Under the pieces are notes generated by a model. It saw only the letters and a list, made by a program, of their open reading frames with translations. It was not told where the DNA came from and ran no database searches. A stretch of 64,000 nucleotides of DNA. It comes from Adineta vaga. Lineage: Eukaryota; Animalia; Rotifera. Of this stretch, positions 1 to 20,203 are shown piece by piece. The stretch spans positions 744,001 through 808,000 of the forward strand of contig CP075496.1 of NCBI GenBank assembly GCA_021613535.1, given 5' to 3'. The stretch's first letter is position 1; each line of letters opens with the position of its first letter. The translations under genes were made by a program, and so were the position numbers.

Positions 1-221
1 TTTTACCGTCAAAATGATATCTCAAATATTATAAATAAATTGAATGTGAAAAATCCTCGACATATGGATTATTAATTAACTCATCTCTACATACAAATAA
101 ATATTTATTTCATGTGAATAATAAATATGTAAACATCGGAATGAAATCCGAAAGTTATGTAATACTTCAAAAACTTTCATGACGATAGGTATTGCTAGTA
201 ACGCGGCGAAATAGCCGCACA

Positions 222-1385
222 CCCTCTACTGAAAGGATATAGTCAGATCGCTTATGTCACTTGGACTAAGGGCAGAATTGTATCCATTCGTAAGTCCAAT
301 CACTTGTTAATTTGTCCAACAGTCTTCTATTCATGTTCATCTTGCTTACTTTGACCTTCTCAAACTAACGTGTAGTCGTTCGTCGGCCTCCCTTTGGTCA
401 GCGACTCACGGCTAGCTGTTGATATACAATCAATTTTTCTATTTTAACACCTCAAAATAACTCGTTCTTAGTGGATCGGTTCCTAATCGAGCATATTGCA
501 ACTTTATGTAACAGTATGATGTGTATTACATATTTTATTTTTCCTATTATTTTCAGGCATGGATAATCTGTTGAGTCCGTTCTTAAAGAGACTTCAAGTA
601 CGTTCCTTCGAAAACCCATTCAAGGTACCGGAGACTCTCAAATATAGTCGTTGAAGTAACTCTAGAAATAAACGTCTAGCCGTTTCTACCGAAATATCCA
701 TTGTACTCTCCATTTTTCATTTTCTTTACAAGCGAATGAATGAGTTGACTTTTATTCTAAACCCTCCTCAAGAGTATAAGCCCACTGGGCTTCTAATGTG
801 TCCAGAAAATTATAAGTCTAAAGGTGGGCTTATATTTGGGCACTATTTTTTTCGCATTGCTGATTAGGTGGCTTCTATTATATCTGGAAAATTATAACAT
901 TGATAGTGGGCTTTTATTCTGGAGGGGGATTTATGTCCAAAACCAATGACATTATATTGTATATAAGCCCCACGCACAATTAGAATGAATCAGAAAATGT
1001 TAGCTCTAGAGTACTATTTCTAACCGCTCATAATCATTTCTCAAATTCTAACAGCATAGTTGATTGCCTCGTATGCTAAGTACCAGAAAAGACGTGAGAA
1101 AATAGTCCACAAAAAACTAACGTCTGATTCAGTTTCTCCGACCGCGATTATCTTTGATCAAACTTTATTGCAAAATAATAATTATTGAATAATTAGTTAA
1201 TTAACAAATTAAATAATTAATAATTCAGCAAAACTAACATTAGATTCGCTTTTCTCGACTTCGATTACCCTTCGGTGAAGTTTCGTTCAGGACTACTCTC
1301 ATTAAATAAAATATCTAACAATGTTATGATGAACGAACGAACGAACTTTAACTCATTCTGCGTATACCCTCCTTTCAGTAGAGGG
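222..1385. mobile_element. Non-autonomous TIR DNA element, ~1.16 kb, CCC...GGG termini
   Basis: Perfect 16-bp terminal inverted repeats CCCTCTACTGAAAGGA (222-237) and TCCTTTCAGTAGAGGG (1370-1385). No ORF inside; internal small inverted and direct repeats (775-970, 1115-1270). TSD not clear. Confidence 0.7.
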
Positions 1386-1388
1386 AAT

Positions 1389-1610
1389 AAAGACTGATAA
1401 CTAATGCAGATATCATCAAGACGAAGTTCACCCAAATTCCTCTGATGACTTTCATCGTAGTGGTTTCACCTTCATACTGATCTTCCACTACACATTAGCG
1501 ACTGTGAGCGAAAGTTTGATGGCGGCAGCTATTGCGTAGATGGACAACTGACATGAAGATCATCTGGGTGAAATTCGTTCCGATAAGTTTTCTATCAGTT
1601 ACTAGTCCCT
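1389..1610. mobile_element. Degenerate MITE
   Basis: Imperfect long inverted repeat: AGACTGATAACTAAT...CGAAGTTCACCCAAAT vs ATCTGGGTGAAATTCG...ATCAGTTACTAGTCCCT. Confidence 0.45.
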
Positions 1611-1691
1611 ATAGTCGTTACTATCATGAAACTTCTTTCGAAGTACACACAATTCTCGGATTTCAATAGGAGGTTTTTGTTTCAATTAAGT

Positions 1692-1823
1692 TATTCGTTG
1701 TTTAGCATTATTTAATGAAAATTTCAAACTTCATGCTATTCGAATTACAATTAAAACAAAAACATCTCAAACTATACAAATTATTCCATTACCAATTCAA
1801 CAAATTTTGCTGAATATGACATT
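1692..1823 (+). pseudogene. Fragment of the terminal exon of uncharacterised gene X; left arm of an inverted repeat with ~5820-5952
   Basis: Almost exact reverse complement of 5820-5952; encodes LALFNENFKLHAIRITIKTKTSQTIQIIPLPIQQ. Confidence 0.8.
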
Positions 1824-2198
1824 TTCTAAACAAAGACTAGAACCTTTCACTTTCGACATGGGACTGTTTCTCTGACTCATCATCTATAGAATATTGCACA
1901 ACTCAATGAAAGTCTATTTTTTTGCCATATAGAAATATTTTTCATAAAAATGTCTGATTTCGTGAAGACAATGTATGTTATTCATGATTTACAGAGACAG
2001 AAGCGTGTTTTTTCCATATTTACTCCCCCTAGATTTCATCGCAAATGTTCTTTATCCTTATTCACTGGGTATATTTTTATTAAACGACGTCATTACTATG
2101 ATTCATCGATGAGTTTTACATAGTCAAGCTCATCGTATATATAAAGAGAGAAAAAAAACAAAGATAGAAACACTTCTGCATATTAACATAGTCAAACA

Positions 2199-4754
2199 AT
2201 GCTTCGAATAAAAAGTATTTTGCAAGGTGGAAATAATGTTTCCGTTAAAGAAAAATATGTTCCTTTGAAAGAAGTTCGTGTTGAAGGAAAGATTCATTCT
2301 TTTGCAGCTGATGTAACAATCAAACAAATCTTTCGTAATGAAGAAACCAATCCAATTGAAGCTGTTTATTGTTTTCCAATTGAAGAACAAGCAGCAATTT
2401 ATAAATTTGTTGCACAAATTGATGATCGACAAATTGAAGCTGAATTAAAAGAAAAAAAAGAAGCACAAAAAGAATACAACGATGCTCTTCAACAAGGTCA
2501 TGGTGCATATTTACTCGAACAAAATGAACAATCACAAGATAATTTCATCATTAATGTTGGTGCACTTTTACCTGGAAAAGAATGTCATATAACAATATCA
2601 TATGTAACTGAATTAGATCTAATTGAAAATGGAAAAAAAATTCATTTTGTTGTTCCAACAACCATTGCACCTCGTTATAATCCATCCCAAGGTGGAATAT
2701 CATCACCAGCTGGAACAAATTCTCAATATATTCAAACAACACCATATACAATTGATTTTCAATGTCAAATTGATAAAACAAATGTTTCAAGTGTTAGTTC
2801 ATCATCTCATCCAATTCAAATTGATTTAAATCAAACAGATTATTATTTAATAAAATTTAGTCAAACTAATACACATTTAGATCGTGATATTCTTGTTGAT
2901 ATTCATTTAAATGAACAACGATCAAATACAATTTTAGCAATTGAATCAAATGTTTTTATGATTTCATTTACACCAAATGAAGAAGATTGTCGACGTGCAA
3001 TGAAGAATGTTGAAACAACAAATGAATTTCTCTTTATTGTTGATTGTAGTGGATCAATGCAAGATGAAAATAAAATTGGTTATGCTCAACAATCAATGTT
3101 ACTTTTTCTTAAAAGTCTCCCATTAAATTCTCAATTTAATATTATTCGATTTGGATCAGATTATCAATCATTATTTGATTCAGCAACTGTTGTTTATAAT
3201 GAAGAAAACTCAAAAAAAGCAGAACATTTAATTAAAAACATGCGAGCAGATTTAGGTGGAACAGAATTAGTAAGTGAAACGTATTTTATTTAAAACTTTA
3301 ATTTAATTCTTTTATTCTTATTTTAGTTAAATCCATTAAAATGGCTTGAAGAACATCCACCACAAGAAGGTCGTTCTCGACAAATCTTTCTTTTAACTGA
3401 TGGTGAAATCTCTAATGTTGATCAAGTTCTTGATTTATGTCGTTCAATGTCAAAATCATCTCGAATCTTTTCATTTGGCTTAGGAGCTTCGCCAAGTCGT
3501 TCATTAGTCAAAGGTTTAGCACGTTCAACAAATGGTCGTTTTTGTTTTATTCCACCATCAACAAAAGTTGATACATTTGTTGGACAACAATTAGAAAAAG
3601 CACTTCAACCATCAATAACAAATATTCAAATTAAATCGAATTTATCTTCACAAATAACAACAGCACCAAAAGTTCTCCCACCCGTTTATGCAAATGATCG
3701 TTTGATTATCTATGGATTTCTTGATAACTCATCATATGAATTTGATCATAATATTGAAATTGAATTATTTAATAATGAAAATAAATTAAGTGAAGCAAAA
3801 ATTACACAAATACCAAATATAATTACGAATCAAACAATTAGTCGTTTAGCTGGAAAAGCTTTAATACTTGAATTACAACATTCAAAATTAGCACCAATTC
3901 GTAAAGGATCAACGCAACCAAGATTTCAAGAAGAAAATAAACAATCTATTGACGAACAAAAAGAAGAACAAAAGAAACGTATTATTGATTTATCATTAAA
4001 ATATCATATTTTAAGTCCTCATACATCTTTTATTGGAATTGAAAAACGTTTAAATGGAAATAATGATCAAATGGTTTTACGTGAAGTTCCAATTCAAATT
4101 TCAGCTGATGATCAACACTTACAAACGCCACGTTTTGCAAGTTTATCTAGTGCAAGTGGAATGCTTAACAGTTGTATGATGTCGTGTGCACCCAAACGTT
4201 CGTATCAAAATCATATTATGAATAGTTGCGTGAATATGGTAGGTTCTAATGCTTCATGTCACATGCTAATGAATTCGTACAATGAGGAATCTCTTTCTAT
4301 GGATTGTAACAACTCTTCCTACCTTCAAATGTCGCGCCCCAACCTCAATCGTACTAGTCCACCATCTCCTCCTGTGTATTTATCTAATATGCGAGGATTC
4401 CTAAAGCATGAAGAAGGCAGCGTAGAAAAAGAATATAAAGAAAAATTTCCAAGCGATGATGAAGATATTGTTCGTTATTTAATCGATAAACAAAATTTCG
4501 ATGGTCTATGGTCATTTGACCCGAAAATTATTGAAAAATTAACTGGAAAATCTTTAAAAGAATTTCAATATTCAATCAAAAAAGAATTAATTATTTCGAT
4601 GATAATTCTTATTCTATTAGAAACACGTTTTTCATCATATTCATCAATGTGTCATGGAATTATACAAAAATCAAAAAAACGAATTTTAGATTTACTTAAC
4701 AAAGATCAAAATCAATATCAATCTTTTTACGATCAAATTCGTCAACAACTTTAA
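2199..4754 (+). CDS. VIT + von Willebrand factor A domain protein (VWA5A/PARP4 C-terminal-like), 2 exons: 2199-3269, 3327-4754
   Basis: VIT motifs (NPIEAVYCFP, EAQKEYNDAL, INVGAL), MIDAS DCSGSM, ADLGGTEL, IFLLTDGEI, IFSFGLG, C-terminal QNFDGLW domain. A 57-nt GTAAGT..TTTTAG intron (3270-3326) joins the two ORFs in frame. Confidence 0.92.
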
Positions 4755-5471
4755 AGATTTTATTTGTTGCTTTCAATAAATCAGATTTATATTTTAAAAG
4801 TTTTATTAAAATAAAGACAAAGAGAATCATCAAAAAATGTTTTTATTTGTAAGAATTAAAGTTAAATAATATGAAGGAACTACTTAAAGTAATATATTAT
4901 AAAAGAAAACACGGAATAAAATGAGAAAGATAAAATACCTTATTCTTTCATAAATATGACTATTGACTGGAGAATTTCTTTTGTTTTCGTTTCTATTTAT
5001 TGTTTTGTCATTAATTGTGTTAAACCATGAATATCATCTATTGTTCGTATCATGACTTATCGTAGTAAGAACAACATTTTTCTTTTCCTTCTCTTTCATT
5101 CTTACGCATGTACACATCAAATTTCAAGTACATAGTCGTGTTTTTTTTCCTTGTGGAATTTTCCACTAGGTCTTTTCCCTTACTGTTCTCTCTTGTATGT
5201 GATTGCTCTGGTGTTTTTCCGTGCATAAAGAAATACTTTGGAATAACTCATTTTTGATAATCTATAATATAAATATTTCGTATCTCATATATAAAACTTG
5301 CTATGTTATATAAAGAACATAAAAACAAATAGTTAAGTGATATTCAACTGACTATCAAATGTAGTCGGGTTGTCAAGACACGTCTGTTCAAAAAATGACA
5401 ATATAATTAATTGATAGTTAGGGACAGAAATTAATGGAGAACTCATATACTTTACAAATTTGAAATGAATT

Positions 5472-5634
5472 CTTCAATTCAATTCTTTTCAACATTACGA
5501 AAGATTTGTTTGATTGTTATATCACTCGGAAATGAATGAATTTTTCCTTCCATATGAACTTCCTTTAAAGAAACATATTTGTCTTCCACAAAAACATTTG
5601 TTGCATCCTGTAAAATATTATTTATTCAAAGCAT
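5472..5634 (-). pseudogene. Inverted, degenerate 5' fragment of the VWA5A-like gene
   Basis: Minus strand from ATG 5634 reads ML*INNILQDATNVFVEDKYVSLKEVHMEGKIHSFPSDITIKQIFRNVEKN*IE, homologous to MLRIKSILQGGNNVSVKEKYVPLKEVRVEGKIHSFAADVTIKQIFRNEETNPIE. Upstream 5640-5800 matches the promoter region of the other copies. Confidence 0.85.
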
Positions 5635-5813
5635 CGTCAGATTATATTAACGTGTTTCTATCTTATTTTTTCCTCTTTATATATGCAACAACCAGGAGTA
5701 TGTAAATATACTTGATAAAGAAGACTAAAGAACATTCACGATGAAATTCAGGTTCTATTCTTGATGAATCCTAGAATATTCCTATGTTGGAAGTGAAAGG
5801 ATTTATTTTTTAT

Positions 5814-6720
5814 TTAAAAAATATCATATTCAGCAAAAATTTGTTGAATTGGTAATGGAATAATTTGTATAGTTTGAGATGTTTTTGTTTTAATTGTAAT
5901 TCGAATAGCATGAAGTTTGAAATTTTCATTAAATAATGCTAAACAATGAATAAATGAATCGAAAATATCTTCGTGAACAATTAATTGAAATTGTTCTTCT
6001 TTTTTTGCCCGTTTTTGTAAAGTTTTAATGAATTGTTTATCCCATGTTGGTGAACGAAAACACGAAAGATCACAACCAAATGTAAATTTAATAAAAGAAT
6101 TCTTTTTATCATCATTTATTGAATAAATTAAAACAAAATATCGAATTTCAATTGAACAATCATCAGTAGAAACAAAACCAAGAATAGTTGATGAAGATAA
6201 ATGCAGTTTATCAATTAATTTCTCTAATGTTGGTAAATTTAATGGTTGATTGATCTAAAATTTTCATCAAGTTATTTTCTAATAAAAAAATATTGAAATA
6301 ATACTTGTTCAATAAGAAGATTGGAATGTTTCATTTGTGTATCTTCAATTTGAATTCGAATTCGAAGTGGTTGTGGTAAAAGAGGATGTGCTCGAAGACG
6401 ATGTTGATTATCAATACCAGGTGTACCGGTTATTTGAATTTGAATTGTTAATGAACATAGGAAAAGTTTATTTGGATCAAGATTAATTATCTCATCATTA
6501 TTATTTTGTTTTATTTGACAAGATTTCCATTCTTTACTTCCATCTTCTGATGAAATTTGTTCATATTCAGCAGATAATGTAAATGAATTGAAAAATTGAC
6601 CATTTCTTGCGTATAAATCTTGATTACGTTCAATTAGAGATGATTGATTTATGAGATGAATGAATGAAAAACCTTCATTAGAATAGATTTGAGGAGCTAA
6701 AAATGCTTTTTTGGACAATC
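5814..6720 (-). pseudogene. Last two exons of uncharacterised gene X (6305-~6720, 5814-6254); 5' part decayed or missing
   Basis: ORF 6272-6718 splices via a 50-nt intron (6255-6304) to an open terminal exon INQPLNLPTLEKL...QQIFAEYDIF*. No intact upstream exon or start was found. Confidence 0.6.
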
Positions 6721-7155
6721 TAAAAGTACTAAGAATGATGCTGAATTGAATTAGTATTTTTCAATAATTCTTCATGTTTCTAAAACTAACTTTTTAGTCA
6801 ATCGAACTATTTTTCAACATAATTCTAAATAGATTTTCATTCAAAATAATCATCAACAAATTGGAAAATACAAACAGCAACGATATGAATTCTCTAAAAA
6901 AATGATTAGATTAAGACTTCATAAATATTGTCTTTGTTTTTCTTTTTCCAACAGAATAAATTTTTCTCTCGTATATTATTTAAAGCCTATTGAATGGCAA
7001 TAATAGAGAGAAAAAAAATAGCAACATTTTTTTTCATTTCCTCATTCATTATCTCATCGAATAATTGAAAAGGATGTTATTGTTTTCATTGACGATATCG
7101 GTCAACACAGAATCAATCAGTGTATATCTGGAAAAAAAGATGATCGCACACAAAT

Positions 7156-9219
7156 ATGCAACATTTATTCATTCATTTAGACGAATTACCTGATGAAATA
7201 CTTATTGATATATTTAAAAAATTGCACAATGTCCAAGTAATTTATTCTTTAATGGATGTCAATCAACGACTTACTCGAATCGTACATGATACATACTTTA
7301 CTCGTAGCCTATATTTTCTAGAATATTCACCAGATAACGAAACAATATCTCCATTATCAGATCTAACACTCGATCGATTTTGTTCAAAAATATTACCGGA
7401 AATTGGACACCGAATTCAAACTTTTTATCTCGAACGGATGTCAATAAAACGTATTCTTCACGCTACAAATTATCCTAATTTAAATAATCTTAGTTTATAT
7501 GACATGGATTATGAAGTTGCTATGTCTTTATTTGATGGTAAGAAATTTTCTCTTATTGATTTTATTGTATAATTAAGTAGTTATTAGACAAGAGAATGAG
7601 TGATAAAAATAGATATTCATAATGAAACAAGTAATAATTGAAAAATTACTTTTTCTGTTTTATGTTTATTGACTCTGCAGAGATGTCTTCACGAAGAAAA
7701 GAATTCGGTTATTGATTTGTATAAGAAAAATTTGTTGAAAAAGATAATCGATTGAAGGTTTTTTTTACATTATTGATCGAAAGGAAAAATCAATACTATA
7801 AGTAAATGAGACAACAGTATCAATCATATAGAATAAAATTTATGAAAAAATTCAGAAGAAAAGAAAACGTGACATAGATTATAAGACTGTTAAATAGAAA
7901 ATCTTTTATTTAGATAAAAATCCCTTAGCTTATGTATTCAAGAATCAAATTTCATCATTATTTATCAGTTTTAATATGGTGAAGAAATCGCTTCCAAAGG
8001 GCATGATCTATTCAGATATATTTGCAAAAATTTTGACGATATTTACTAATCTACGATGTTTAACATTCAATCCATGTGCATCTTTTCTTGATGCTGTATT
8101 CTTTACTTTGATACATAAAACTGCTGTGTCTTCGACGTTAGTAGAGTTACATATCAGTGTGGCAGAAATTCATGATTGTCTTAATTTACTTGATGGACGT
8201 TTTGATAAACTTCATATACTACATGTTACTGTTTGTAACATTTACTCGTGGCTAAGTGAAATTAAAGTTGAAGTAGGTTATATTTATTAATATTTTGTTT
8301 GAATGTACTCATTTGTTTTGATTTTCAGTAAAAGGTATTACCAAATTTACGAATTTTTTCTTTGTCCTCCGACTATAAGATACATGATTTTGATGAAGTA
8401 ATTGTGTCACTTCTACGTCGAATGTTAAATTCAGAAGAACTACATTTAAATATTCGAGTCAAATGTTATGAGAAATTTATTGATGGTTATAAATTAAAGA
8501 ATGATATTCTTATTCATATGCCAAGGTTACATAAATTCATATTTAATATTTTTTCAATTCTTAATCATTGTGATCAAACAAATTTCCCATCAAATGAGCA
8601 TATTGAAAAAACGTTTGAATATTTTTATGATGAAAAAGTAATTACTTGTATTGATCATTTCGAAGAAGGAGGATATAGTCAATGTCATATCTACTCATAT
8701 CCATATAAATCGAAAGTTTACAATAATATAACAAATAATTTTCAAGGTGGATTATTTACTAATGTTACTGAAGTATTATTATATGATGAACATCCATTTG
8801 AATACGAATTTTTATTACAAATTTCAAAATCATTCCCATTTATGAAAGAATTAACGTTAAGGAATTCGAAATCATTGAATAATAAACAACTTAGAAAATT
8901 AAATAAGAATAATGAAATCTTATCAATTATTGGATATCCTAATCTTAAACGACTTGATCTTACTGATGCTCATGTTGATTATGTCGAATTATTCTTATTT
9001 GATAGGAAAATAGCGTTGCCAAATAATCTTCATCTTTGTGTGGAATATCGATCATTAGAAAATGTGACATACAATTTTACAAGATATACAAGACCAAATA
9101 ACTGTGAAAAGCTTACTGATTTATATTTTTATCCAGCAGATCAAATCAGTGAACGTATTAAAAGATATTTTTCTTATACATGTATACGTTGTAGTTCTGA
9201 TTTTCGATTATGTAAATAA
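7156..9219 (+). CDS. F-box/LRR-like protein of the type expanded in bdelloid rotifers, 3 exons (7156-7537, 7914-8272, 8329/8335-9219)
   Basis: N-terminal F-box LDELPDEILIDIFKKL; family-type motifs LDRFCSKILPEI, CHIYSYPY, YDEHPFEYEFLLQISKSFPFMKEL; canonical splice sites. The strongest exon-3 acceptor is followed by an in-frame TAA. Confidence 0.75.
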
Positions 9220-9495
9220 GAAATAGATGAAATTATTGAAATAAACGAAAGAAAAATGAAGCAAGATACAATTATATTGAAAATTGTGGTACAACTGAGA
9301 AATGACAGCAACGAAATTTATCCGTATAGAATTTATATTTATATATAAAAATGATTTAATTAATGATCGACATGTTGAAAGTTTCTATATGATATCTAAG
9401 ATATCATTTTGATAATAGAATATCGAGTTTAAAAGATATTTCTATGTTTGAAAGAAGAAAACCAAAGAAAAAGAAATAACAAATACATTTTATTT

Positions 9496-11469
9496 TTAAA
9501 AATCAATGAAAATTTGTAAAAGTTGTGTAATATAGATCAATAGGTGTGAGATTTTCGACTGAGTCATGTGACATTCATCATTAGAATCAGTAATTTCTGA
9601 TAAGCTTTGAAAAACTTGTTCCAATTGTAGCAAATGTGCAGATGAAGTTCCAGCATGTTTTACAACATCAACAAATTGTTTAATTGATTGAGAAAATAAT
9701 TTTGATGATGATAATTTATCAAGTAATATTTCCATAGATAAATCATGTTGTGTATCACCATATATCAATAAAGAGTATTGTTCAGCTGAGATACAAATAC
9801 CTTTAATATGTAAAAAATTTATTGAATTTAATTTGAACAAAAGAAACAAATAATTACTTCACCTTGTTTCATTAGCATTTCAATAATTTTTGAATTATAT
9901 GCAGCACCAATATCTTCATAATTTGTAAGTTCTTGTTCAATTGCATTAATGAACAATTTCTCTTTTGATGGGCCTAATATAGAAAAAAAAGCATATGATA
10001 GAATGATTTCTTTTGTTATTCCTATATATTTATTTGAAAGCAAGATGCACCAGCAAGTAAGTCAATAATAGGTCGAATGGCATGTCGATCATTTCCAGGT
10101 ATATCTTTCTTTACAAAACTGACAATATCTTCAGCACGTGATTCTTCATGACTTTCGAAAAAGGCCAAAATGCGGTTCAGTACATTTACTTGTACAGCTA
10201 AAGTAATAAACAATTCATTAAAATGAACAAGTTTGGAGAAAAACTCAAACCTCGATCATGAAATATTTCATTTTGAAAACTAGTACTTGACCAAACTTTA
10301 TTTTTTTATTGTTGAGGATTTTTATGAGCAATAAAAAGTTCAGCACGTATGCATTCACTAAGAATACGTATTGTTCTAATAGATTCCAAACAACTTTGAT
10401 TATCAATATATTGACTTTTAATTAAGAAAATATTTTTCTTATCAACGAACGACTGAATATTGATTCACATTCTTTACTATTAACTAAAAAATTAATCATA
10501 TAAAAAAAGTAATATAAACTCTTAAGTTTTTCTTACTTATTTTCTTAATTTTGATTGATATATCAATAAGAATTTCTTCTATATTATCAAACGATTTTTT
10601 TGTTTCATCATCAAGGTTCATATAAGATCGACATTGACTATGACGTTCTGTACATTCTACAGGTAACTATGTTTAAATTAAACAAAAAAGAAATTTTTAT
10701 TTTAATGTTTAATAATTAATTCTAATATTTACTTGCGATGGATCATATAGAATAAATAGTAATGGATAATTTATTGGTAACCGATCAACCGATGTACGAT
10801 CAATCTCATTGGAAATTTGTTCTTGTGAACCTTGTCTTTCATTATGTATTTTATCAACACATTATTTACATATTGTATAATGACGTGTTGATGATGTTAT
10901 TGGAAGATATGATTGATTTTCCTATTGAAACATATGGAAGCAAGTACCTAGATCGACAAATCCGATATTGGATCCGATAGAACCCCATAGAATCCAACTT
11001 TTCTACAAAATCCTATCGGATTCCTGGTGACGGATCTGTATTGGAATCTGTACATAGCCCAAAAGTAATCGTTTTGAAGGAAAATACAGTTGGTTTTCGA
11101 TGCCGTAAAACTGCGCCCGTGATTACAGACCGAAACGGCCTGTTTACTGCCGTAAGGGTACCGTTTCATCACAGTTCACGTTCCGAAAACGCACTGTGTA
11201 CGGCTACGTTTTGATTAACCTGGGTACGATCTTATGTCCACCTGTCGAATCCGTCGAAATTCGTTTTTTGGAAACTATAGAATCCGCAACCGACAGAATC
11301 CGAAGTGATTCTGTCACCAGGAATCCGATAGAATATTGTCAGATCATAAGATTCCGATATAAATCGGCATGGGATTCGATCAGATCCGAGTATCGGATTG
11401 GTCGACCTCGGTGCTACAACGTAAAAATTGCATATAATATGGTTCAATTAACTTATTGGATTTGGACAT
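9496..11469 (-). pseudogene. Roquin-like (RING + ROQ domain) pseudogene, interrupted by a MITE
   Basis: MSKSNKLIEPYYMQFLRCS[MITE]TCFHMF..YLPIT..YTICK*C..RLPINYPLL (RING). HKNPQQ*KNKVWS, LLAGASCFQI, CSLMQL and ISAEQYSLLIYGDTQHDLSMEILLDKL parallel Roquin HQNPQQLSSNLW, LLYRASCFKV, SSLMQL and [27 protein letters not shown]. In-frame stops at 10922, 10862 and 10306, plus frameshifts. Confidence 0.8.
10947..11411. mobile_element. MITE, TIR consensus CCCAGGTCGACCAATCC, 2-bp TA/TG target duplication; carries a nested element end at 11224
   Basis: Left CCTAGATCGACAAATCCGAT and right ATCGGATTGGTCGACCTCGG. Removing the element plus 2 bp restores R-C-S-T-C in the host RING exon. Internal ...ACGTTTTGATTAACCTGGG-TA end. 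Confidence 0.85.
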
Positions 11470-12009
11470 TTTCTTTTAAATATCTATAAATAGATGAATA
11501 AAATAAATGTTTTGTTTTTTCGTCAATATAGATAGATAGAGCTTCTTATTAATAAACAATTTATTGAGTATGTTTTGTAATGATGATAACAGACAAAATT
11601 ATTTCTTTGTATCACTATTTAACTGACTGGTTAAAGAGATAAATAGCAGAGAGAGACAGAGAGGGAGAAGAAGAAAAGAAATAGATGGCGACGAACGTAT
11701 TTGTCTTCACTTTCTCTCTTTTTCCTTATTTCTTGTGGTTCACATGTATGTGATTATGTGTCTATAGTAAGGATAACACAGAAAAGAGATTTGACGATAA
11801 CAAATATACATACATTCGTTTGAAAACAAGCATTTCTATTGTTGTATAAGAAAACAACCAAAGATCACTGAAAAGAAATTAACTAAAAAGGAGTTGTTAT
11901 CTTTTTGTTTTTAATCGATGTTTATTAAAATTGATTTTTATCTGATTTTTGTAAGAAAACATTCTGTATAAATAGATGATGATAAAAAAAAATTTTTTCA
12001 TAGAATTTT

Positions 12010-12235
12010 CATTCGGTTGTGATCTTTCAAGTTTTCGTTCACCAACATAGGATAAACAATTCATTAAAACTTTACAAAAAAACGAGCAAAAAAAGCGAAT
12101 CAATTTCAATTAATAGTTCATAAAGATAATTTCGATTGATTTATTCATTGTTTAGCACTATTTAATCAATCTTTTAGAAGTAAAACAGAAACATCAACAA
12201 CTATTCAAATATTTGCTGAATATGACATTCTTTAA
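12010..12235 (+). pseudogene. Degenerate remnant of the gene X terminal exon upstream of VWA5A copy 2
   Basis: TTCGGTTGTGATCTTTCAAGTTTTCGTTCACCAACATAGGATAAACAATTC... matches the reverse complement of ~5820-6080, with a stop and deletions. Confidence 0.75.
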
Positions 12236-12600
12236 TTAAAAAATAAATCCTTTCACTTCTGACATAGGAACATTGCTATGACTCATCATGAATAGAATAT
12301 ATTGCACAAGTCAATGAAAGTGTATTTTCTTGCCATATGGAAATATTTGTAATAAATGCTTATCTTATTTTATAGAGATAATGTATGTTATTCATAATTT
12401 TTAAAGCCAAAAACTCTTTTTTCCTCGTATTTGTTCACCCTGGATTCTATCGAGAACATTCTTTCGTCTTATTCACTAGGTAAATTTTTATTAAATGACG
12501 TCATTACTATGATTCATCGATGAGTTTTACATAGTCAAGCTCATCGTATATATAAAGAGAGAGAAAAACAAAGATAGAAACACATTGGCAAAGTCAAACG

Positions 12601-15095
12601 ATGCTTCGAATAAAAAGTATTTTACAAGGTGGAAATAATGTTTCCGTTAAAGAAAAATATGTTCCTTTGAAAGAAGTTCGTGTTGAAGGAAAGATTCATT
12701 CTTTTGCAGCTGATGTAACAATCAAACAAATCTTTCGTAATGAAGAAACAAATCCAATTGAAGCTGTTTATTGTTTTCCAATTGAAGAACAAGCAGCAAT
12801 TTATAAATTTGTTGCACAAATTGATGATCGACAAATTGAAGCTGAATTAAAAGAAAAAAAAGAAGCACAAAAAGAATACAACGATGCTCTTCAACAAGGT
12901 CATGGTGCATATTTACTCGAACAAAATGAACAATCACAAGATAATTTCATCATTAATGTTGGTGCACTTTTACCTGGAAAAGAATGTCATATAACAATAT
13001 CATATGTAACTGAATTAGATCTAATTGAAAATGGAAAAAAAATTCATTTTGTTGTTCCAACAACCATTGCACCTCGTTATAATCCATCCCAAGGTGGAAT
13101 ATCATCACCAGCTGGAACAAATTCTCAATATATTCAAACAACACCATATACAATTGATTTTCAATGTCAAATTGATAAAACAAATGTTTCAAGTGTTAGT
13201 TCATCATCTCATCCAATTCAAATTTAAATCAAACAGATTATTATTTAATAAAATTTAGTCAAACTAATACACATTTAGATCGTGATATTCTTGTTGATAT
13301 TCATTTAAATGAACAACGATCAAATACAATTTTAGCAATTGAATCAAATGTTTTTATGATTTCATTTACACCAAATGAAGAAGATTGTCGACGTGCAATG
13401 AAGAATGTTGAAACAACAAATGAATTTCTCTTTATTGTTGATTGTAGTGGATCAATGCAAGATGAAAATAAAATTGGTTATGCTCAACAATCAATGTTAC
13501 TTTTTCTTAAAAGTCTCCCATTAAATTCTCAATTTAATATTATTCGATTTGGATCAGATTATCAATCATTATTTGATTCAGCAACTGTTGTTTATAATGA
13601 AGAAAACTCAAAAAAAGCAGAACATTTAATTAAAAACATGCGAGCAGATTTAGGTGGAACAGAATTAGTAAGTGAAACGTATTTTATTTAAAACTTTAAT
13701 TTAATTCTTTTATTCTTATTTTAGTTAAATCCATTAAAATGGCTTGAAGAACATCCACCACAAGAAGGTCGTTCTCGACAAATCTTTCTTTTAACTGATG
13801 GTGAAATCTCTAATGTTGATCAAGTTCTTGATTTATGTCGTTCAATGTCAAAATCATCTCGAATCTTTTCATTTGGCTTAGGAGCTTCGCCAAGTCGTTC
13901 ATTAGTCAAAGGTTTAGCACGTTCAACAAATGGTCGTTTTTGTTTTATTCCACCATCAACAAAAGTTGATACATTTGTTGGACAACAATTAGAAAAAGCA
14001 CTTCAACCATCAATAACAAATATTCAAATTAAATCGAATTTATCTTCACAAATAACAACAGCACCAAAAGTTCTCCCACCCGTTTATGCAAATGATCGTT
14101 TGATTATCTATGGATTTCTTGATAACTCATCATATGAATTTGATCATAATATTGAAATTGAATTATTTAATAATGAAAATAAATTAAGTGAAGCAAAAAT
14201 TACACAAATACCAAATATAATTACGAATCAAACAATTAGTCGTTTAGCTGGAAAAGCTTTAATACTTGAATTACAACATTCAAAATTAGCACCAATTCGT
14301 AAAGGATCAACGCAACCAAGATTTCAAGAAGAAAACAAGCAATCTATTGACGAACAAAAAGAAGAACAAAAGAAACGTATTATTGATTTATCATTAAAAT
14401 ATCATATTCTTAGTCCTCATACATCTTTTATTGGAATTGAAAAACGTTTAAATGGAAATAATGATCAAATGGTTTTACGTGAAGTTCCAATTCAAATTTC
14501 AGCTGATGATCAACATTTACGAATGCAAAACTTTGCAAGTTCATCTAGTGCAAGTGGAATGCTTAACATGTGTATGATGCCGTGTGCACCCAAACTTTGG
14601 TCTCAAAATCATATTGTGACTAGTTGCGCGATGAAGACAAGTTCTATGAATTATGGCAATTTCTGCCAAGCACAAATGTCGCACCTCACCTTCGATCGTA
14701 CTATTCCACCATTTCCTTCTGATTGTTTATCTAATTCTCGACGATTCCTAGACCATGAAAGCGTAGAAAAAGAATATAAAGAAGAATTTCCAAGAGACGA
14801 TGAAGATATTGTTCGTTATTTAATCGATAAACAAAATTTCGATGGTCTTTGGGCATTTGATTCTGAAATTATTGAAAAATTAACTGGAAAATCTTTAAAA
14901 GAATTTCAATATTCAATCAAAAAAGAATTAATTATTTCAATAATAATTCTTATTCTATTAGAAACACGTTTTTCCTCATATTCATCAATGTGTCATGGAA
15001 TTATACAAAAATCAAAAAAACGAATTTTAGATTTACTCAACAAAGATCAAAATCAATATCAATCTTTTTACGATCAAATTCGTCAACAACTTTAA
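12601..15095 (+). pseudogene. Second VWA5A-like copy with a 4-bp deletion frameshift (stop 13225-13227); intron 13668-13724
   Basis: Nearly identical to 2199-4754, including the intron. CAAATTGATTTAAATC in copy 1 is CAAATTTAAATC here. Could be a true null or an assembly error. Confidence 0.85.
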
Positions 15096-15847
15096 TGAAT
15101 TACTTTATTTGTTTGTTTTTTTTAAATAGAAAATAAATTAGATCTTCATAAAACAACGAAAAGGAAATGTCGTCATATATTTTATAATAATATAAATTGA
15201 AGATTATTATTTTTCTAAAGTTTTATTAAAAGACAGAATAAGAAAATCAGCGGAAAATGTTTTATCTATGACTAACGGTTAACAAATGAAGCAACTACTT
15301 TGAGTAATACATTATAAAAAAAGAAACGAAATGAGAAAGAGAATTTCCTAAGAAAGAACAATAAAAGAAAAGAATCAGAAGTTAAAATATCTTGTTCTTC
15401 CATAACGATGAATTTGACTAGAAAATTTCTTTTGTTTCCTTCAATTTATTTCTTCATTCGATTTTCCGTTTGTTGTTTTGTTGATAATTGTGTTAAACCA
15501 CGAAGAGATGTTCCATTATCTAAATAAAATTAATAATTAAAAACAATCTTTTTTTCTTCTTCTTTTATATTCAAATGGATTGTGCTAATTCGTGTTCCCC
15601 GTTGAATGACGCGTATCTGTTTTCTTTGATGAATATTAATGTATATATGTATCTTACCGTGAGTCATACTGCTGTTATTTGAGCGTCGGATAACGACGAG
15701 GAACACCAAGTAGCACAAACTGATTGTATATGTTATTGCAACAAAAATTTTATCAAAAAGCCAAGCAAAATGTTCATTTGATTTCTTAACTAGAGTAAAA
15801 TCAATCACAATACTAACCAAAGCAAAGCATTTTACAAAAGCAAACTA

Positions 15848-18101
15848 TTACCCACCTGTTAAATCATTTCCAGGTAAAATTGTTGCATCTGAAAATAAAT
15901 TTAAATAGATATTTTTTTAAAAAGAAAAAGCATTTTTTCAAACCTTTCTTTTGTTTAATTGATGTTATTGTTGGAACATCATCGGATGATGAAGCATATG
16001 TTTCACTTACTACTTTACTTATTGATGTTGGTCCTGTTAAATTACCTACACCTGATAGAACACATAGAATAGATTAAATATTCAACTAATATGTTTTTCT
16101 TTACCTTGGCTATAACTTGTTACAATTGTTGATTTAACTGTCCAATTCGATTCCGGTATATGTGATGTTGTTTGATCATGTGAAAGAAGTGTTGATCTAA
16201 TTTGATTGAAAGAAAAAAAGAAATTTGATTTTTATAAGAAATGAATGAAACTAACGGAGAATGACCAAGTAAAGGCGTTGATGTTTTTTCATTCAAAAGT
16301 TTCTGTGAAAGAACGGTTGTTTTCGGAGCTTCTTCAATGATCTTTTGTGTAACAACAGTTGGTTTTGAAATAACATTTTGTGTGGCAACGGTTGTTTTTG
16401 GAGCTTCTTCAATGATCTTTTGTGTAACAACAGTTGATTTTGAAATAACATGTTGTGTGGCAACGGTTGGTTTTGGGCTCTCCGTAATGATCTTTTGTGT
16501 AAGAACGGTTGGTTTTGGAACTTCTGGAGTAACATTTTGTGTGACAACCGTTGGTTTTGGGCCTTCTGGAATAGTCTTTTGTGTACCAACGGTTACTTTT
16601 GGAATTTCTTCAATAATCTTTTGTGTAACAGTGATTGGTGTAGTTGATTGTTTAGTAGAATTCGTAACTTGCTGAGTTGATGATGAAAGAGTTGTTCCTT
16701 TGGATGAGGTTTTAGGAAGATTAGTAATTTGCTGTAATGGGATTGATGATTCTTTAGTTGTGACTGTTTTTTCAGGTAGAATTTGTCTTGGTTGTGATGG
16801 ATGATATTGTTGAGGAAGATGAGCAATATTTCGTTCTAATTGTTGTTGAATATTTGAAAACGAATCTCGACCAAAATAATCAATATGGCCAGCTTCCCAA
16901 GCACGACGATGTGCAGCTGATCCTGTTTCAACACCTCGATTACTTGTTAAATTTCCATAATTAAGTGAACCAGAATATTGACCAAAAGAGTTCTATAATT
17001 TATATTTTTTAAAGAAAATTCAAAGAAAAAAATCATTTACCTGTTGATGAAAAGCTGATTGATTATTTGAATCATCAATCTAAAGAAAATATTTTATATA
17101 ATAAAATTTGTAGAAGAAAAAAACAAATTTACTTTATTAAATTTTGATAATTTTGGCCAAACATTTCGATGCATAATTCTCCACCAAGAAAGAAGAAAAT
17201 CTCTTTGAACATCGCTTTGTCCTGTTGAATTTCCCGATAATTGTTCATTTTGTGGATTATATGTTAATTGCCATGGTTTAGTTGCACCAGCAAAATGAAC
17301 AACATGAATATCATTACGAAACCTATTTGAAAAACGAAATATTCATTTCATTGACAAAAAAAAACTCTTCCTTCTTACCTTGTAACTGCTGGTAAATATG
17401 AATAAAATGCATTTGCTGTAACATTATATGTAAATGGTAAATGTCGAGATATATCACCTGATCTCCAACTAGAAAAGAAATCATTTAAAAGACCTTGATC
17501 ACCACCTAAAAGAGATAATAAAAATCAAATAAATTCTTTTGTTTTGAAATAAACAAACCATCAAATGATGAATTTTGTTGTGATGCAAAGTTCATAAGTT
17601 TTCGAAATGTTTCTTTTGATGGTTGATAAACAAAAACACCTGAATTGAAACAATCAGGCCAACCAGCATCAGGTGCAGCTGAAAATTCTTCTCTTTCAAA
17701 TAAATCATCTATCGGACGTAGAACAACACAATCGGAATCCAAAAAAACACATTTTGTATATTGTTCTAATAACCAACAATTGATTTTTGTAAATGTAATT
17801 CCAAGTTCTGGTCGTGCTAATAATTTTAAATGTTCACTATCATTTGAATTTAATTCTTCAACAACAACTAATTCATCAAAACTTGTTTCTAATGCTTGTC
17901 TAAATAAAATATTTCATAAATTTATTCTTTTTCTTTACAATTAAAAATTACTTACTTAATTGTATCAGATAAATGATTTGATATAAGTACAACTAATTTT
18001 GCTTTTGTTCCAACTTGACGAATTGATTCAGCAAGTACAAGTGCACCAAGAGCATAAGCATCATTTGTTGCTAATGTTACAAATGCTTGGGATGTAGACA
18101 T
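15848..18101 (-). CDS. GYG1: Glycogenin (GT8) with a long Thr/Pro/Val-rich repetitive C-terminal extension, multi-exon
   Basis: [93 protein letters not shown], and the glycogen-synthase-binding motif [17 protein letters not shown]. Short GT-AG introns. Confidence 0.92.
16300..16632 (-). repeat. Coding tandem repeat of 30- and 39-nt units ([13 protein letters not shown] / [11 protein letters not shown]) inside glycogenin
   Basis: Repeated TCTTTTGTGTAACAACAGTT / TTTTGTGTGGCAACGGTTG units; a 69-nt higher-order unit is duplicated across ~16325-16465. Confidence 0.9.
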
Positions 18102-19580
18102 TTTTTATTGAAGAAATATCTTGATGAACTTTATTTGATATAAAAAGAAAACAAAGAGAAATGATTGTACACTTAAACATACCTCACTATTTAAATCAAT
18201 TCTTATCATCTATGTGTCGAACTGTTCCTTTGTACCATCACGCTGTCAGTGCATGCTTTCTGTTCGTTACACTCGTTCGTACAAAGAATAAAAGTTTCAA
18301 AATATTTTTTTTTAAAAATTGACCTTAATGCACTTTGATCTCAAACACTTTCTTTGCTGTAAAAAAACGTCTTGTCTAAGATAAAAAAATCTGAAAATGT
18401 TCTCTCATCGATATAACATTAAACAAAGGAGAGATTTTCCAGAAAAGAAAAGAAAAGAAATAGACGAAGACGAATGTTTCTTAAACTAAATGAACTGAAA
18501 AGAAAAGGAACTGTTAGGTAGAAATAACGAGTTAGAAAAGAATGTTACGAAACAATACAATCTTTCGATTTTTATTTAAATTCAATTATTCACTTTTATT
18601 AACAAATTATATTTCAAATAATAATTGAAGATTTCTTCATTTGAAAAACGAATTGATTTTCTTCAAAAAAAAGAAGATAATTTTAATTATAGATGTCAGT
18701 CACAAAAAGAGAAATTTAGATCTTTGGATTTTATTCGTTATCTAAAGATAAAGTTAGTAATAAAATAAGTTTTTTTGGTGAAACCATTATGTAAGTTTTG
18801 AAGATAAGGTGTTTTCGTGAGTTCCGTTTATTAATGAACAAGAACAAGAGTGAAAGCAACACACGTATATATATAGATATGATATAGAGAGAAGGAAGAG
18901 AGAAGAACTAGATGGCGCTCGGTGTACGAAATACGAAAGAGAACAAAGATACACGCACATATATATAGGTATATGTATTGGATAATTTCTTCGTATATGT
19001 GATGATATGAATAAGGAAAACTTCAATATACATATTTCGGAATTGTCCAAATACTAGCACATTAGATCAATTCATTATCTATTTTTGGACTTTGAACTTT
19101 CAAAGATATCTTTCATTTTTAATCTTCAATTACTTTTAGTAAATTCTAGACATAGATGAAAATTGTCCGGAAAATTATTGATAACTACTATCCGGATGAT
19201 GAGTGCGGGTGTTGACATGGAAGTAGAATATATCCTCACCCCCGCCCATACGAATCAAAACATTTTCAGTGGAGTGTGAACAATAGAAAACGTTAGCTTG
19301 TATTTGGCGGACGCCTGCGAATGCGAACTAGTCTGAAATGATAAGGATGATTGATTCGTCGATGACTTTTGTTTGATTTAATCAATTGTAGTCATTGAGT
19401 TATACATATATAGATAGATAGAGAGAGAGAGAAAAATATATAAATACTTTACATACAGAAAAGTTTGCGGTGATTTTGAATCATTATAGATTATTCATAC
19501 TGTTATTTTGATTAATCGAATGACACCAATAAATTGTTCACAATTCAATAAAAAATTTAAAGGAAAAGAACTTTCAAAAG

Positions 19581-20203
19581 ATGAATAATCAAAAGTAAGA
19601 TTTGTTTCATGAGTTCATAAATTACTGAGTGTATTTTTAGATCTTGAATAATTTTATTGCACAATGTGAAGTGATCGACAATCAACTGGAATATCGTTCA
19701 CATCGAGCTCTTATTCATTTTGATATGTCCAATTGGCAAGGTAAAGAATATTTCTATTTATTATCTTTACATGAATTATGCTTTTTTTCTTTTAGAAGTG
19801 TTGTCTGACATCCAATTTGTTGAAAATGTATCAAAATCTATCTGATTCTTTGCTTCTGATAAAATGGTACGTAAAAACTGTGTATTCTCTTTAAAACAAG
19901 ACTAATGTATTTTATTAAATAAGAAAGCAACTTTTTATTATGATGCATATAAACTTCGAGAAGAGATAAAAAGTGTCAAAGGATTGAATTGTAAGATAAT
20001 TCTTTTTATTTAACATATGTATTATTTAATATGTTTTTCAGTGTTTGTCAACAAATATCAGTCGGAGTTTTTCAATGCTAATAGTAGTGATAACATTGAT
20101 AAACTTTGTGCAGGTATGTTTACATTTGACTTTAAATAGGAAGACTATTTTCATTGATTTTAGAAAATAAAAAGAAACGGTTCTCATTGAAGCGATTAAA
20201 CTA
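19581..20203 (+). pseudogene. Small multi-exon decayed gene inside a ~1.35-kb segment absent from the duplicate block
   Basis: A chain of canonical donors and acceptors gives ILNNFIAQCEVIDNQLEYRSHRALIHFDMSNWQ-EVLSDIQFVENVSKSI*FFASDKM-KATFYYDAYKLREEIKSVKGLN-LFVNKYQSEFF..DKLCA-ENKKKRFSLKRLN*. One internal stop and a first-exon phase mismatch. Confidence 0.45.

Follow-up and report, generated by a model that had tools for sequence, protein, structure and literature searches.

Probable relaxed constraint in the disordered linker of conversion-homogenised VWA5A/PARP4-like paralogues of Adineta vaga

The window, a 64,000-nucleotide stretch that is part of Adineta vaga chromosome 4, contains two of three clustered paralogues of a VWA5A/PARP4-like gene, here called copies A and B. 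The third paralogue, copy C, lies on the minus strand just upstream of the window and forms a near-perfect inverted pair with copy A; it had been missed by the first-pass annotation, as had a frameshift in exon 1 of copy B. The features of the locus are as follows.

2199-4754, plus strand: copy A, VWA5A/PARP4-like gene
2199..3269, plus strand: copy A exon 1, 357 aa, VIT and first half of vWA including the DxSxS MIDAS (ORF, Pfam)
3270..3326, plus strand: copy A intron, 57 nt, GT..AG (spliced joint in run contigs)
3327..4754, plus strand: copy A exon 2, 475 aa and stop; remaining vWA, beta-rich region, linker and C-terminal helical domain
4120..4445, plus strand: copy A linker island, residues about 623-730, predicted disordered
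4446..4751, plus strand: copy A C-terminal five-helix domain, MINT-like (AF2, VIA structure comparison, dN/dS)
4837, plus strand: copy A probable poly(A) addition site
5472..6120, minus strand: inverted, truncated 5' gene fragment (promoter and first-exon region; blastn)
12601-15095, plus strand: copy B, VWA5A/PARP4-like gene
12601..13667, plus strand: copy B exon 1, with a 4-bp deletion and premature stop
13668..13724, plus strand: copy B intron, same sequence as the copy A intron
13725..15095, plus strand: copy B exon 2, 456 aa and stop (P0002, 416 aa from an internal Met)
14518..14786, plus strand: copy B linker island (protein alignment, site patterns)

The product of copy A exon 1 is identical to the N-terminus of the database protein P0001 (Adineta vaga I4U23_017356, 832 aa), which, together with exon references, served as query for the searches. 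Splicing is seen as a joint, 3269>3327, that skips the 57 nt; runs X3 and X13 have it in their contigs, the DNA run X4 does not. A contig of run X5 matches 4463-4837 exactly and continues behind 4837 into a loose end of A residues. In copy B, the assembly sequence lacks 4 bp between 13221 and 13222 (A 2820-2823), which leads to a stop at 13225-13227. The inverted 5' fragment shares 78-90 % identity with 1680-2361 and belongs to the duplicated unit, as the same fragment adjoins copy C. An Rfam search of positions 1-20000 gave no match.

The encoded protein is of the intracellular VWA5A/PARP4 type, with a VIT-vWA head, a disordered linker of roughly 100 aa and a five-helix C-terminal domain. Pfam places the VIT domain (PF08487, E 1.4e-34) at residues 23-135, directly followed by a vWA domain (PF13519, VWA_2, and PF13768, VWA_3) that runs across exons 1 and 2 and whose D-C-S-G-S MIDAS can be read in the exon 1 frame; residues 19-601 align to PARP4 619-1184 (phmmer, E 1.9e-48). 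No BRCT or PARP catalytic domain was found in the 832-aa protein, for which Pfam gives VIT and vWA only, and reading of the N-terminus reveals no signal peptide. The C-terminal domain is confidently predicted (AF2 pLDDT 94.8). VIA matches it to 9e5c_4t (Z 10.2), and its superposition on MINT residues 1570-1704 of PARP4 (9bw6_B; Z 6.0, rmsd 3.4 Å, 88 residues) falls in the chance range for helical bundles. Foldseek returned no match at E ≤ 0.001, and at sequence level a profile of the domain was significant neither for MINT nor for any PDB sequence, the one resemblance being a QW-like motif as in squalene cyclase. For PARP4 itself, predictions of the complex between the C-terminal domain and major vault protein are reported to fail even for the human pair (PMC12280208). 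Bdelloid rotifers have a strongly expanded set of these proteins, with at least 46 matches in this genome (haploid assembly, 100.8 Mb, 6 contigs) and 333 database matches at E ≤ 1e-20.

Between head and C-terminal domain the linker is predicted to form a disordered tether: AlphaFold assigns it no secondary structure and a pLDDT of 32-38, with values below 40 over residues 613-727. The first-pass annotation had placed a low-complexity linker between vWA and a C-terminal "Q..DG.W" domain in the VWA5A/PARP4 family, and this holds, as Dictyostelium Vwa1, a member of the VWA5A clade, is described with a helical C-terminal domain behind a long disordered loop (PMC10539598) and PARP4 shares that architecture (PMC12280208). 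The linker cannot be aligned between any distant family members, including the relatives in A. ricciae and A. steineri, and its column entropy of 3.0-3.4 bits compares with 0.3-1.8 elsewhere in the protein. Across the family its length nevertheless stays within 86-128 aa, the reading frame is also kept, and the bulk composition persists, with a Ser/Met-rich first half and an acidic second half. Of the Met/Cys richness remarked on earlier, only the first part survives. Over 30 family linkers Met accounts for 5.8 % of residues, against a base-composition expectation of about 1.9 % and a share of 1.3 % elsewhere in the protein; its frequency is highest, 12 %, in the second linker tenth, and the linker of copy A has 8.9 %. 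Cys, at 3.0 %, is no more frequent than in random sequence of the same base composition. A search of the island for tandem or internal repeats, which might account for the Met/Cys richness or the 51-nt insertion, found none. As the Met enrichment is family-wide, the linker is not fully unconstrained.

Comparison of the copies shows how sharply this segment is set off. Pairwise alignment of A 2272-3871 with its counterpart in B contains no mismatch, one 4-bp indel excepted, so that the reported near-identity of the two genes, intron included, is confirmed over about 1.7 kb; all three copies are identical across A 2236-3936. Mismatches between A and B then rise from 2 per 100 bp at 3872-4071 through 9 at 4072-4171 to 14-21 at 4172-4371, where each 100 bp also holds 23-28 gap positions; past 4472 identity returns to 94-97 %. 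The abrupt divergence and reconvergence described previously are thus reproduced, at A 4120-4445 and B 14518-14786. Copy A matches copy C without a difference as far as 4203 and then over 4440-6591, a stretch that takes in 2 kb of non-coding sequence on the 3' side; in the 5' flank the closest pair is B and C. The island core, 4204-4440 in copy A, differs in all three copies. Island indels in the MAFFT alignment are all multiples of three, and protein alignment recovers the noted net difference of 19 aa between A and B (in-frame gaps of 17 and 2) together with the peptides on which it was based. A lax nucleotide alignment leaves room for a compensated +1/-1 frameshift pair in A near 4320-4335, an ambiguous placement. 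The raised GC content of the island is also borne out (0.39, with 0.24-0.28 in the coding flanks). Its GC3 of 0.27-0.32 equals the overall GC of the window (0.28) and compares with 0.06-0.11 in those flanks, ordinary coding sequence here having 0.06-0.2.

Substitution rates show what the first-pass annotation had overlooked: in the island, the increase in synonymous divergence is as large as that in non-synonymous divergence. Island dS is 0.14-0.29 (0.56 in the A-C core) and 0-0.02 in the converted flanks, an increase of 10-50 times. The dN/dS of the island is about 1.6 (pairwise 1.2-2.3; three-branch total 1.60), with a codon bootstrap interval of 1.09-2.69 whose variance is understated; one-sided P values for a ratio above 1 are 0.09 (binomial) and about 0.05 (log-ratio), from several tests and uncorrected. 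Structured parts have dN/dS of 0.07-0.2 (C-terminal domain, 0.15-0.2). The substitutions had been called overwhelmingly amino-acid-changing, which overstates the case, as 85 % are non-synonymous and 78 % would be under neutrality. The island is also no more diverged than non-coding DNA, the A-B p-distance being 0.23 in the island and 0.29 over 931 aligned non-coding positions. The combination typical of diversifying selection, a dN/dS significantly above 1 with unraised dS, is not seen in the island. The outcome is essentially the one that the first-pass annotation had itself taken to speak against its proposal, a dN/dS of about 1 or below where dS is equally high.

Homogenisation of the framework by gene conversion, in contrast, is supported. 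Site patterns among the three copies form a mosaic of identical tracts that fits no single tree, the closest pair shifting along the gene, and a Sawyer-type permutation of concordant runs gives P = 1e-4 for A-C, 0.005 for A-B and 0.008 for B-C. The tracts are 1.1-1.4 kb long, lie mostly within coding sequence and stop where divergence is high. As A and C are identical even in the non-coding 3' flank, their difference in the island requires two flanking conversion tracts or a patch from another donor; a genome-wide search of the haploid assembly for a further donor copy of the island found only A, B and C. Identical tracts that end at high divergence are familiar from concerted evolution of tandem or inverted paralogues with unconverted divergent segments, and by that standard nothing in A, B and C is unusual.

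The tract mosaic, the raised dS, a dN/dS close to 1, the disorder prediction and the family-wide variability together make it probable that the island is an unconverted linker under relaxed constraint within a framework homogenised by conversion. Repeated conversion between the copies would have made their well-conserved coding parts fully alike, leaving the linker, whose amino-acid sequence may change at a roughly neutral rate, with too much divergence and too many indels for conversion tracts to include it. It would thus retain the older divergence of the copies, sequence divergence itself presumably blocking conversion. Selection may at the same time keep frame, length and bulk composition, because the linker would have to act as a flexible tether of the C-terminal domain to the head. 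Several observations pull against a neutral linker: dN/dS exceeds 1 in 3/3 comparisons, with about 24 non-synonymous and about 1 synonymous changes on the B branch; recurrent positive selection has been reported for the homologous linker of PARP4 (PMC4038475); Met is enriched across the family; and the A-C island difference has no donor in the haploid assembly.

The alternative closest to the original proposal is that the linker is a recognition interface whose diversifying selection keeps the copies distinct against homogenisation, as proposed for vertebrate PARP4. We consider this possible but unlikely. In its favor are the dN/dS estimates and their bootstrap interval, as well as an abrupt switch at 4120, before which B-specific changes comprise 5 synonymous and 0 non-synonymous and after which they comprise 0 and 12, all 12/12 within the first 84 bp of the island. 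The A and B islands are, moreover, both present in RNA runs, with exact RNA contigs over the A island at 4152-4380, 4174-4380 and 4077-4414, and the B type recognizable by variants at 4389-4412 and by loose ends at A positions 4230 and 4419 (RNA runs X3 and X5, DNA run X4). Exon 30 of PARP4 has a dN/dS of 1.75 with positively selected sites (Daugherty et al. 2014, PMC4038475), a result that rests on 15 primate sequences, and the radiation response of A. vaga includes vault, PARP and vWA genes (PMC10809525), this gene not having been recognized among the entries listed. Yet the non-synonymous excess falls short of significance, positive selection leaves the raised dS unexplained, the divergence stays within that of non-coding DNA, and the branch with the highest ratio is that of the frameshifted copy B. 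The linker lies in a single open frame at only 7 loci, of which L007/L008 alone are sufficiently close for use as a control; in this pair, which shows no patchy conversion, dS is uniform (0.016-0.027) and linker dN/dS is 0.86. Nor did four runs, all probably from one clonal laboratory line, contain allelic variants of the A island. Extension of the idea to the whole bdelloid family of at least 46 stretches, with the linker as a rapidly diversifying target-recognition surface of the kind suggested for PARP4 in vault-mediated immunity and copies kept distinct, is more doubtful still. Given the raised dS, a dN/dS not significantly above 1 and the limited divergence, a diversified bait or recognition cassette is not supported, and nothing in the A, B and C data demonstrates an immune diversification system. 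An alpha-2-macroglobulin-type bait likewise found no support; without MG or thioester domains in Pfam and without a readable signal peptide, a secreted protease bait is unlikely.

Two further explanations concern composition and assembly. The linker could be a functional Met/Ser-rich low-complexity domain, for example a redox-sensitive or phase-separating one, that is selected on composition and not on sequence; its Met enrichment, conserved length and acidic second half would fit, but Cys sits at random expectation, the number of Met residues per linker spans 1 to 11, and a redox role would be by analogy with Met-rich domains. This account, which is compatible with a relaxed linker, appears quite improbable. 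Collapsed or duplicated haplotypes could in principle give falsely identical flanks, given that the assembly is haploid, that A and C are a near-perfect inverted pair and that the run evidence consists of contigs and not raw or long reads. Such an artefact is highly improbable, as A-type and B-type islands are joined to the shared flanks in independent DNA and RNA runs from 2013 to 2024, the three copies differ in their 5' and 3' flanks, and divergence is graded (0, then 2-9 %, then 25 %) with no single breakpoint.

An unconverted, relaxed linker is an ordinary finding, the pattern being already known in the VWA5A/PARP4 family. The locus offers a small, clean case in which conversion and relaxed constraint mimic a hypervariable cassette, a useful warning for scans that pick out islands of this type. 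It also indicates that the fast-evolving part of rotifer VIT-vWA proteins is the disordered linker before the C-terminal helical domain, as in vertebrate PARP4, and the expanded bdelloid family provides many natural linker variants for testing any PARP4-style conflict hypothesis.

Among known systems, the homologous position is held in vertebrate PARP4 by a disordered region (human exon 30) that lies between vWA and the MVP-binding MINT domain; both segments are highly variable in sequence and length, with dN/dS of 1.75 and about 1.6. The PARP4 region is longer (> 300 aa against about 100), and positive selection is shown there and non-significant in the rotifer linker. The rotifer protein also differs in lacking BRCT and PARP catalytic domains, and its contrast is sharpened by gene conversion among paralogues. 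The VWA5A/BCSC-1 clade, including Dictyostelium Vwa1, consists of intracellular proteins of about 800 aa with the architecture predicted here (PMC10539598), from which the bdelloids depart by strong expansion of the family. With alpha-2-macroglobulin and thioester proteins the rotifer protein shares a variable flexible segment within a conserved multidomain protein, and its C-terminal domain weakly resembles part of the alpha/alpha-toroid thioester domain (Z 7.3-7.4, rmsd 4.2-4.4), but it has five helices rather than twelve and no thioester motif. The VIT-vWA head recurs in ITIH1 and ITIH4 (E 5.5e-11 and 1.2e-7; Foldseek 6fpy); unlike the rotifer protein, these are secreted and processed at a C-terminal cleavage site, and have no equivalent of the linker and helical domain.

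Nucleotide and protein alignments confirm that copies A and B of the VWA5A/PARP4-like gene are near-identical on both sides of a divergent island, as the first-pass annotation had described, and reproduce its peptides. Between A and B there are zero mismatches over 2272-3871 except one 4-bp indel; beyond this, divergence climbs to a maximum at 4172-4371, where each 100 bp holds 14-21 mismatches and 23-28 gap positions, and identity is back to 94-97 % past 4472. The described preservation of the reading frame also holds, with in-frame gaps of 17 and 2 aa in the protein alignment, as does the raised GC of the island (0.39 versus 0.24-0.28 in the flanks). The island is “hypervariable” only against its constrained, homogenized neighbors; non-coding flanks have a higher p-distance (0.29) than the island itself (0.23).

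Searches of the haploid assembly (100.8 Mb, six contigs), run with separate exon references or with the database protein I4U23_017356 (832 aa), identified by database match as the protein of copy A, reveal a third paralogue, copy C, and no island copy beyond those of A, B, and C.

Features of the three copies (window positions unless prefixed C4, chromosome 4; the window spans C4:744001-808000)
2199-3269, plus strand: copy A, exon 1
3270-3326, plus strand: copy A, intron of 57 nt, GT..AG
3327-4751, plus strand: copy A, exon 2, stop codon next
5472-6120: inverted, truncated 5' gene fragment 3' of copy A; an equivalent fragment also follows copy C
between 13221 and 13222 (= A 2820-2823): 4-bp deletion in copy B, with a stop at 13225-13227
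C4:738492-741925, minus strand: copy C, intact, directly upstream of the window

Copy C lies head-to-head with copy A and encodes 810 aa in our own reading of its ORF, of which the NCBI annotation covers only the last 413 (I4U23_017355); with their 3' flanks included, A and C are the arms of an inverted repeat about 4.8 kb in size. Copy C, the deletion in B, and the inverted 5' fragments had escaped the first-pass annotation. The deletion in copy B, which brings a premature stop after 208 codons, sits in a tract otherwise 100 % identical to A and C, and either this copy became a pseudogene very recently or the assembly is wrong at this point.

The relationships among the three copies change along their length. 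In the 5' flank B and C resemble each other most, over A 2236-3936 the three sequences match completely or almost completely, and at 3936-4203 A equals C and B is different. At 4204-4440 all three copies differ, with substitutions private to A (22), to B (10), and to C (27) as well as indels of 51 and 6 nt in A and 9 nt in C. From 4440 to 6591, a stretch that includes 2 kb of non-coding flank, identity between A and C is 98.8-100 % and B diverges. A concordant-run permutation test (Sawyer-type) gives P = 1e-4 for A-C, 0.005 for A-B, and 0.008 for B-C. Together, the mosaic and the permutation result are the signature of repeated gene conversion. The earlier interpretation is partly supported: its framework homogenized by gene conversion stands, whereas the diversified bait that it placed within that framework is not supported.

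Pairwise estimates among the three copies (Nei-Gojobori) give a dN/dS of 0.07 in the N-part and about 0.15 in the C-terminal domain, rising to 1.2-2.3 in the island (dN 0.30-0.35, dS 0.14-0.29). Synonymous divergence in the island is elevated to the same degree as non-synonymous divergence, and the A-C dS falls from 0.56 in the core of the island to 0-0.017 in its flanks. Such equally raised dS fits an older, unconverted segment and is not predicted by positive selection. Ordinary coding sequence has a GC3 of 0.06-0.20. In the long ORFs of the whole window (250 aa or more) it is 0.07-0.20, far under the window GC of 0.28, which indicates that codons ending in A or T are strongly preferred in the A. 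vaga genome. Linker GC3 is 0.27-0.32, matching the GC of the window (mostly non-coding DNA), which fits relaxed constraint that extends to synonymous sites. The best reading, and one that we regard as fairly probable, is that the island is a disordered tether whose sequence constraint is relaxed and which has escaped the gene conversion that homogenizes its neighbors.

Its main rival, diversifying selection on the linker in the style of PARP4, seems rather unlikely. The homologous region of PARP4 has a dN/dS of 1.75 plus selected sites (PMC4038475), and the island shows a non-synonymous excess in the same direction, with a three-branch total of 81.5 non-synonymous and 14.0 synonymous changes (dN/dS 1.60) and a codon bootstrap interval of 1.09-2.69, in which the variance is understated. 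This excess is, however, not significant against a ratio of 1 (binomial one-sided P = 0.09; log-ratio P about 0.05), and it is strongest on the frameshifted copy B. With a mutation spectrum estimated from non-coding DNA (931 aligned positions; ts/tv 1.0, A-B p = 0.294), the non-synonymous fraction expected for the island is 0.78 versus 0.82-0.89 observed. In L007/L008, an independent recent pair of the same family that lacks patchy conversion, dS is uniform at 0.016-0.027 and linker dN/dS is 0.86. Essentially, then, the island has the equally high dS and the dN/dS of about 1 that had been named beforehand as speaking against diversification, although all three of its estimates are somewhat above 1. 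A bait of the alpha-2-macroglobulin type is likewise unsupported: Pfam finds VIT and vWA and nothing else in the copy A protein, hence no MG or thioester domains, and the N-terminus, in our own reading, is not signal-peptide-like.

Across the family, which includes at least 46 matching stretches in the A. vaga genome and 333 database proteins matching at E ≤ 1e-20 (bdelloid rotifers the majority), the linker is the sole unalignable segment in every alignment, with a column entropy of 3.0-3.4 bits versus 0.3-1.8 bits elsewhere. The gene models of A. steineri are entirely without it, which may be a prediction artifact. Length and bulk composition are nonetheless conserved: thirty linkers range from 86 to 128 aa (median 101 aa) and contain 15.7 % Ser and 5.8 % Met, with the Met maximum near the linker start and an acidic second half. 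Of the “Met/Cys-rich” character first ascribed to the island, the Met enrichment holds, as a family-wide trait not special to this cluster, but Cys, at 3.0 % in these linkers, equals random expectation. The Met-rich half might conceivably have a redox role.

The head (residues 19-601) shows homology to PARP4 619-1184 (E = 1.9e-48) and, more distantly, to ITIH4 and ITIH1. In an AlphaFold2 model from a 52-sequence alignment, residues 613-727, the island, have no secondary structure and a pLDDT of 32-38, and the final 105 residues form a five-helix domain (pLDDT 94.8). The top structural match of this domain, 9e5c_4t (Z 10.2, rmsd 2.7 Å, 97 residues), is the C-terminal end of a roughly 800-residue chain in a T. 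brucei axoneme (flagellar doublet-microtubule) structure; by this modeled likeness, the 9e5c chain (4t, 4s) may belong to a VWA5A-like protein that docks on the axoneme. Matches to parts of complement thioester domains reach Z 7.3-7.4 with worse rmsd, and the match to the PARP4 MINT domain (9bw6_B) has Z 6.0 (rmsd 3.4 Å, 88 residues). Because comparison with MINT at the sequence level gives no significant match, we name the domain MINT-like, not MINT. A head that a long disordered loop connects to a helical C-terminal domain is also described for Dictyostelium Vwa1 and the VWA5A clade (PMC10539598), and folded domains separated by long disordered regions are described for PARP4 (PMC12280208). 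The finding is a modest one that fits an already known kind of system.

All sequencing runs were examined as contigs, for the presence of sequence. The copy A intron is removed in contigs of RNA runs X3 and X13 and kept in DNA run X4, and a poly(A)-like end of this copy lies at about 4837. Exact contigs of the A island are present in RNA runs X3, X5, and X13, and B-type island sequence is present in RNA runs X3 and X5, despite the frameshift in copy B, and in DNA run X4; since both types are found in RNA-run contigs, both copies appear to be transcribed. An assembly artifact is unlikely, as both islands, joined to the shared flanks, recur in independent data sets. Separately, seven single-base variants specific to C lie within an otherwise identical tract at 2472-2756, and RNA and DNA contigs of different runs hold different subsets of them (e.g. 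2606 and 2756 together without 2556, 2621, 2624, or 2711), a pattern suggestive of conversion that is still under way, of allelic mosaics, or of contigs that are chimeric.

Between A and B, at 7156-9219, lies an F-box-like gene with leucine-rich-repeat-like ORFs. F-box/LRR genes seem common in bdelloids, so its position next to the copies is possibly a coincidence. In Dictyostelium, the VWA5A-like Vwa1 acts together with an F-box protein (PMC10539598). A GC-rich patch at 11005-11339 (GC 0.41), with 47-nt inverted arms that are 77 % complementary and 241 nt apart, has no match in an Rfam search; it may represent a foldback or MITE-like element of small size. At 16293-16675, overlapping ORFs on both strands, a repetitive peptide pattern, and a strongly positive GC skew look like a tandem repeat, coding or non-coding.
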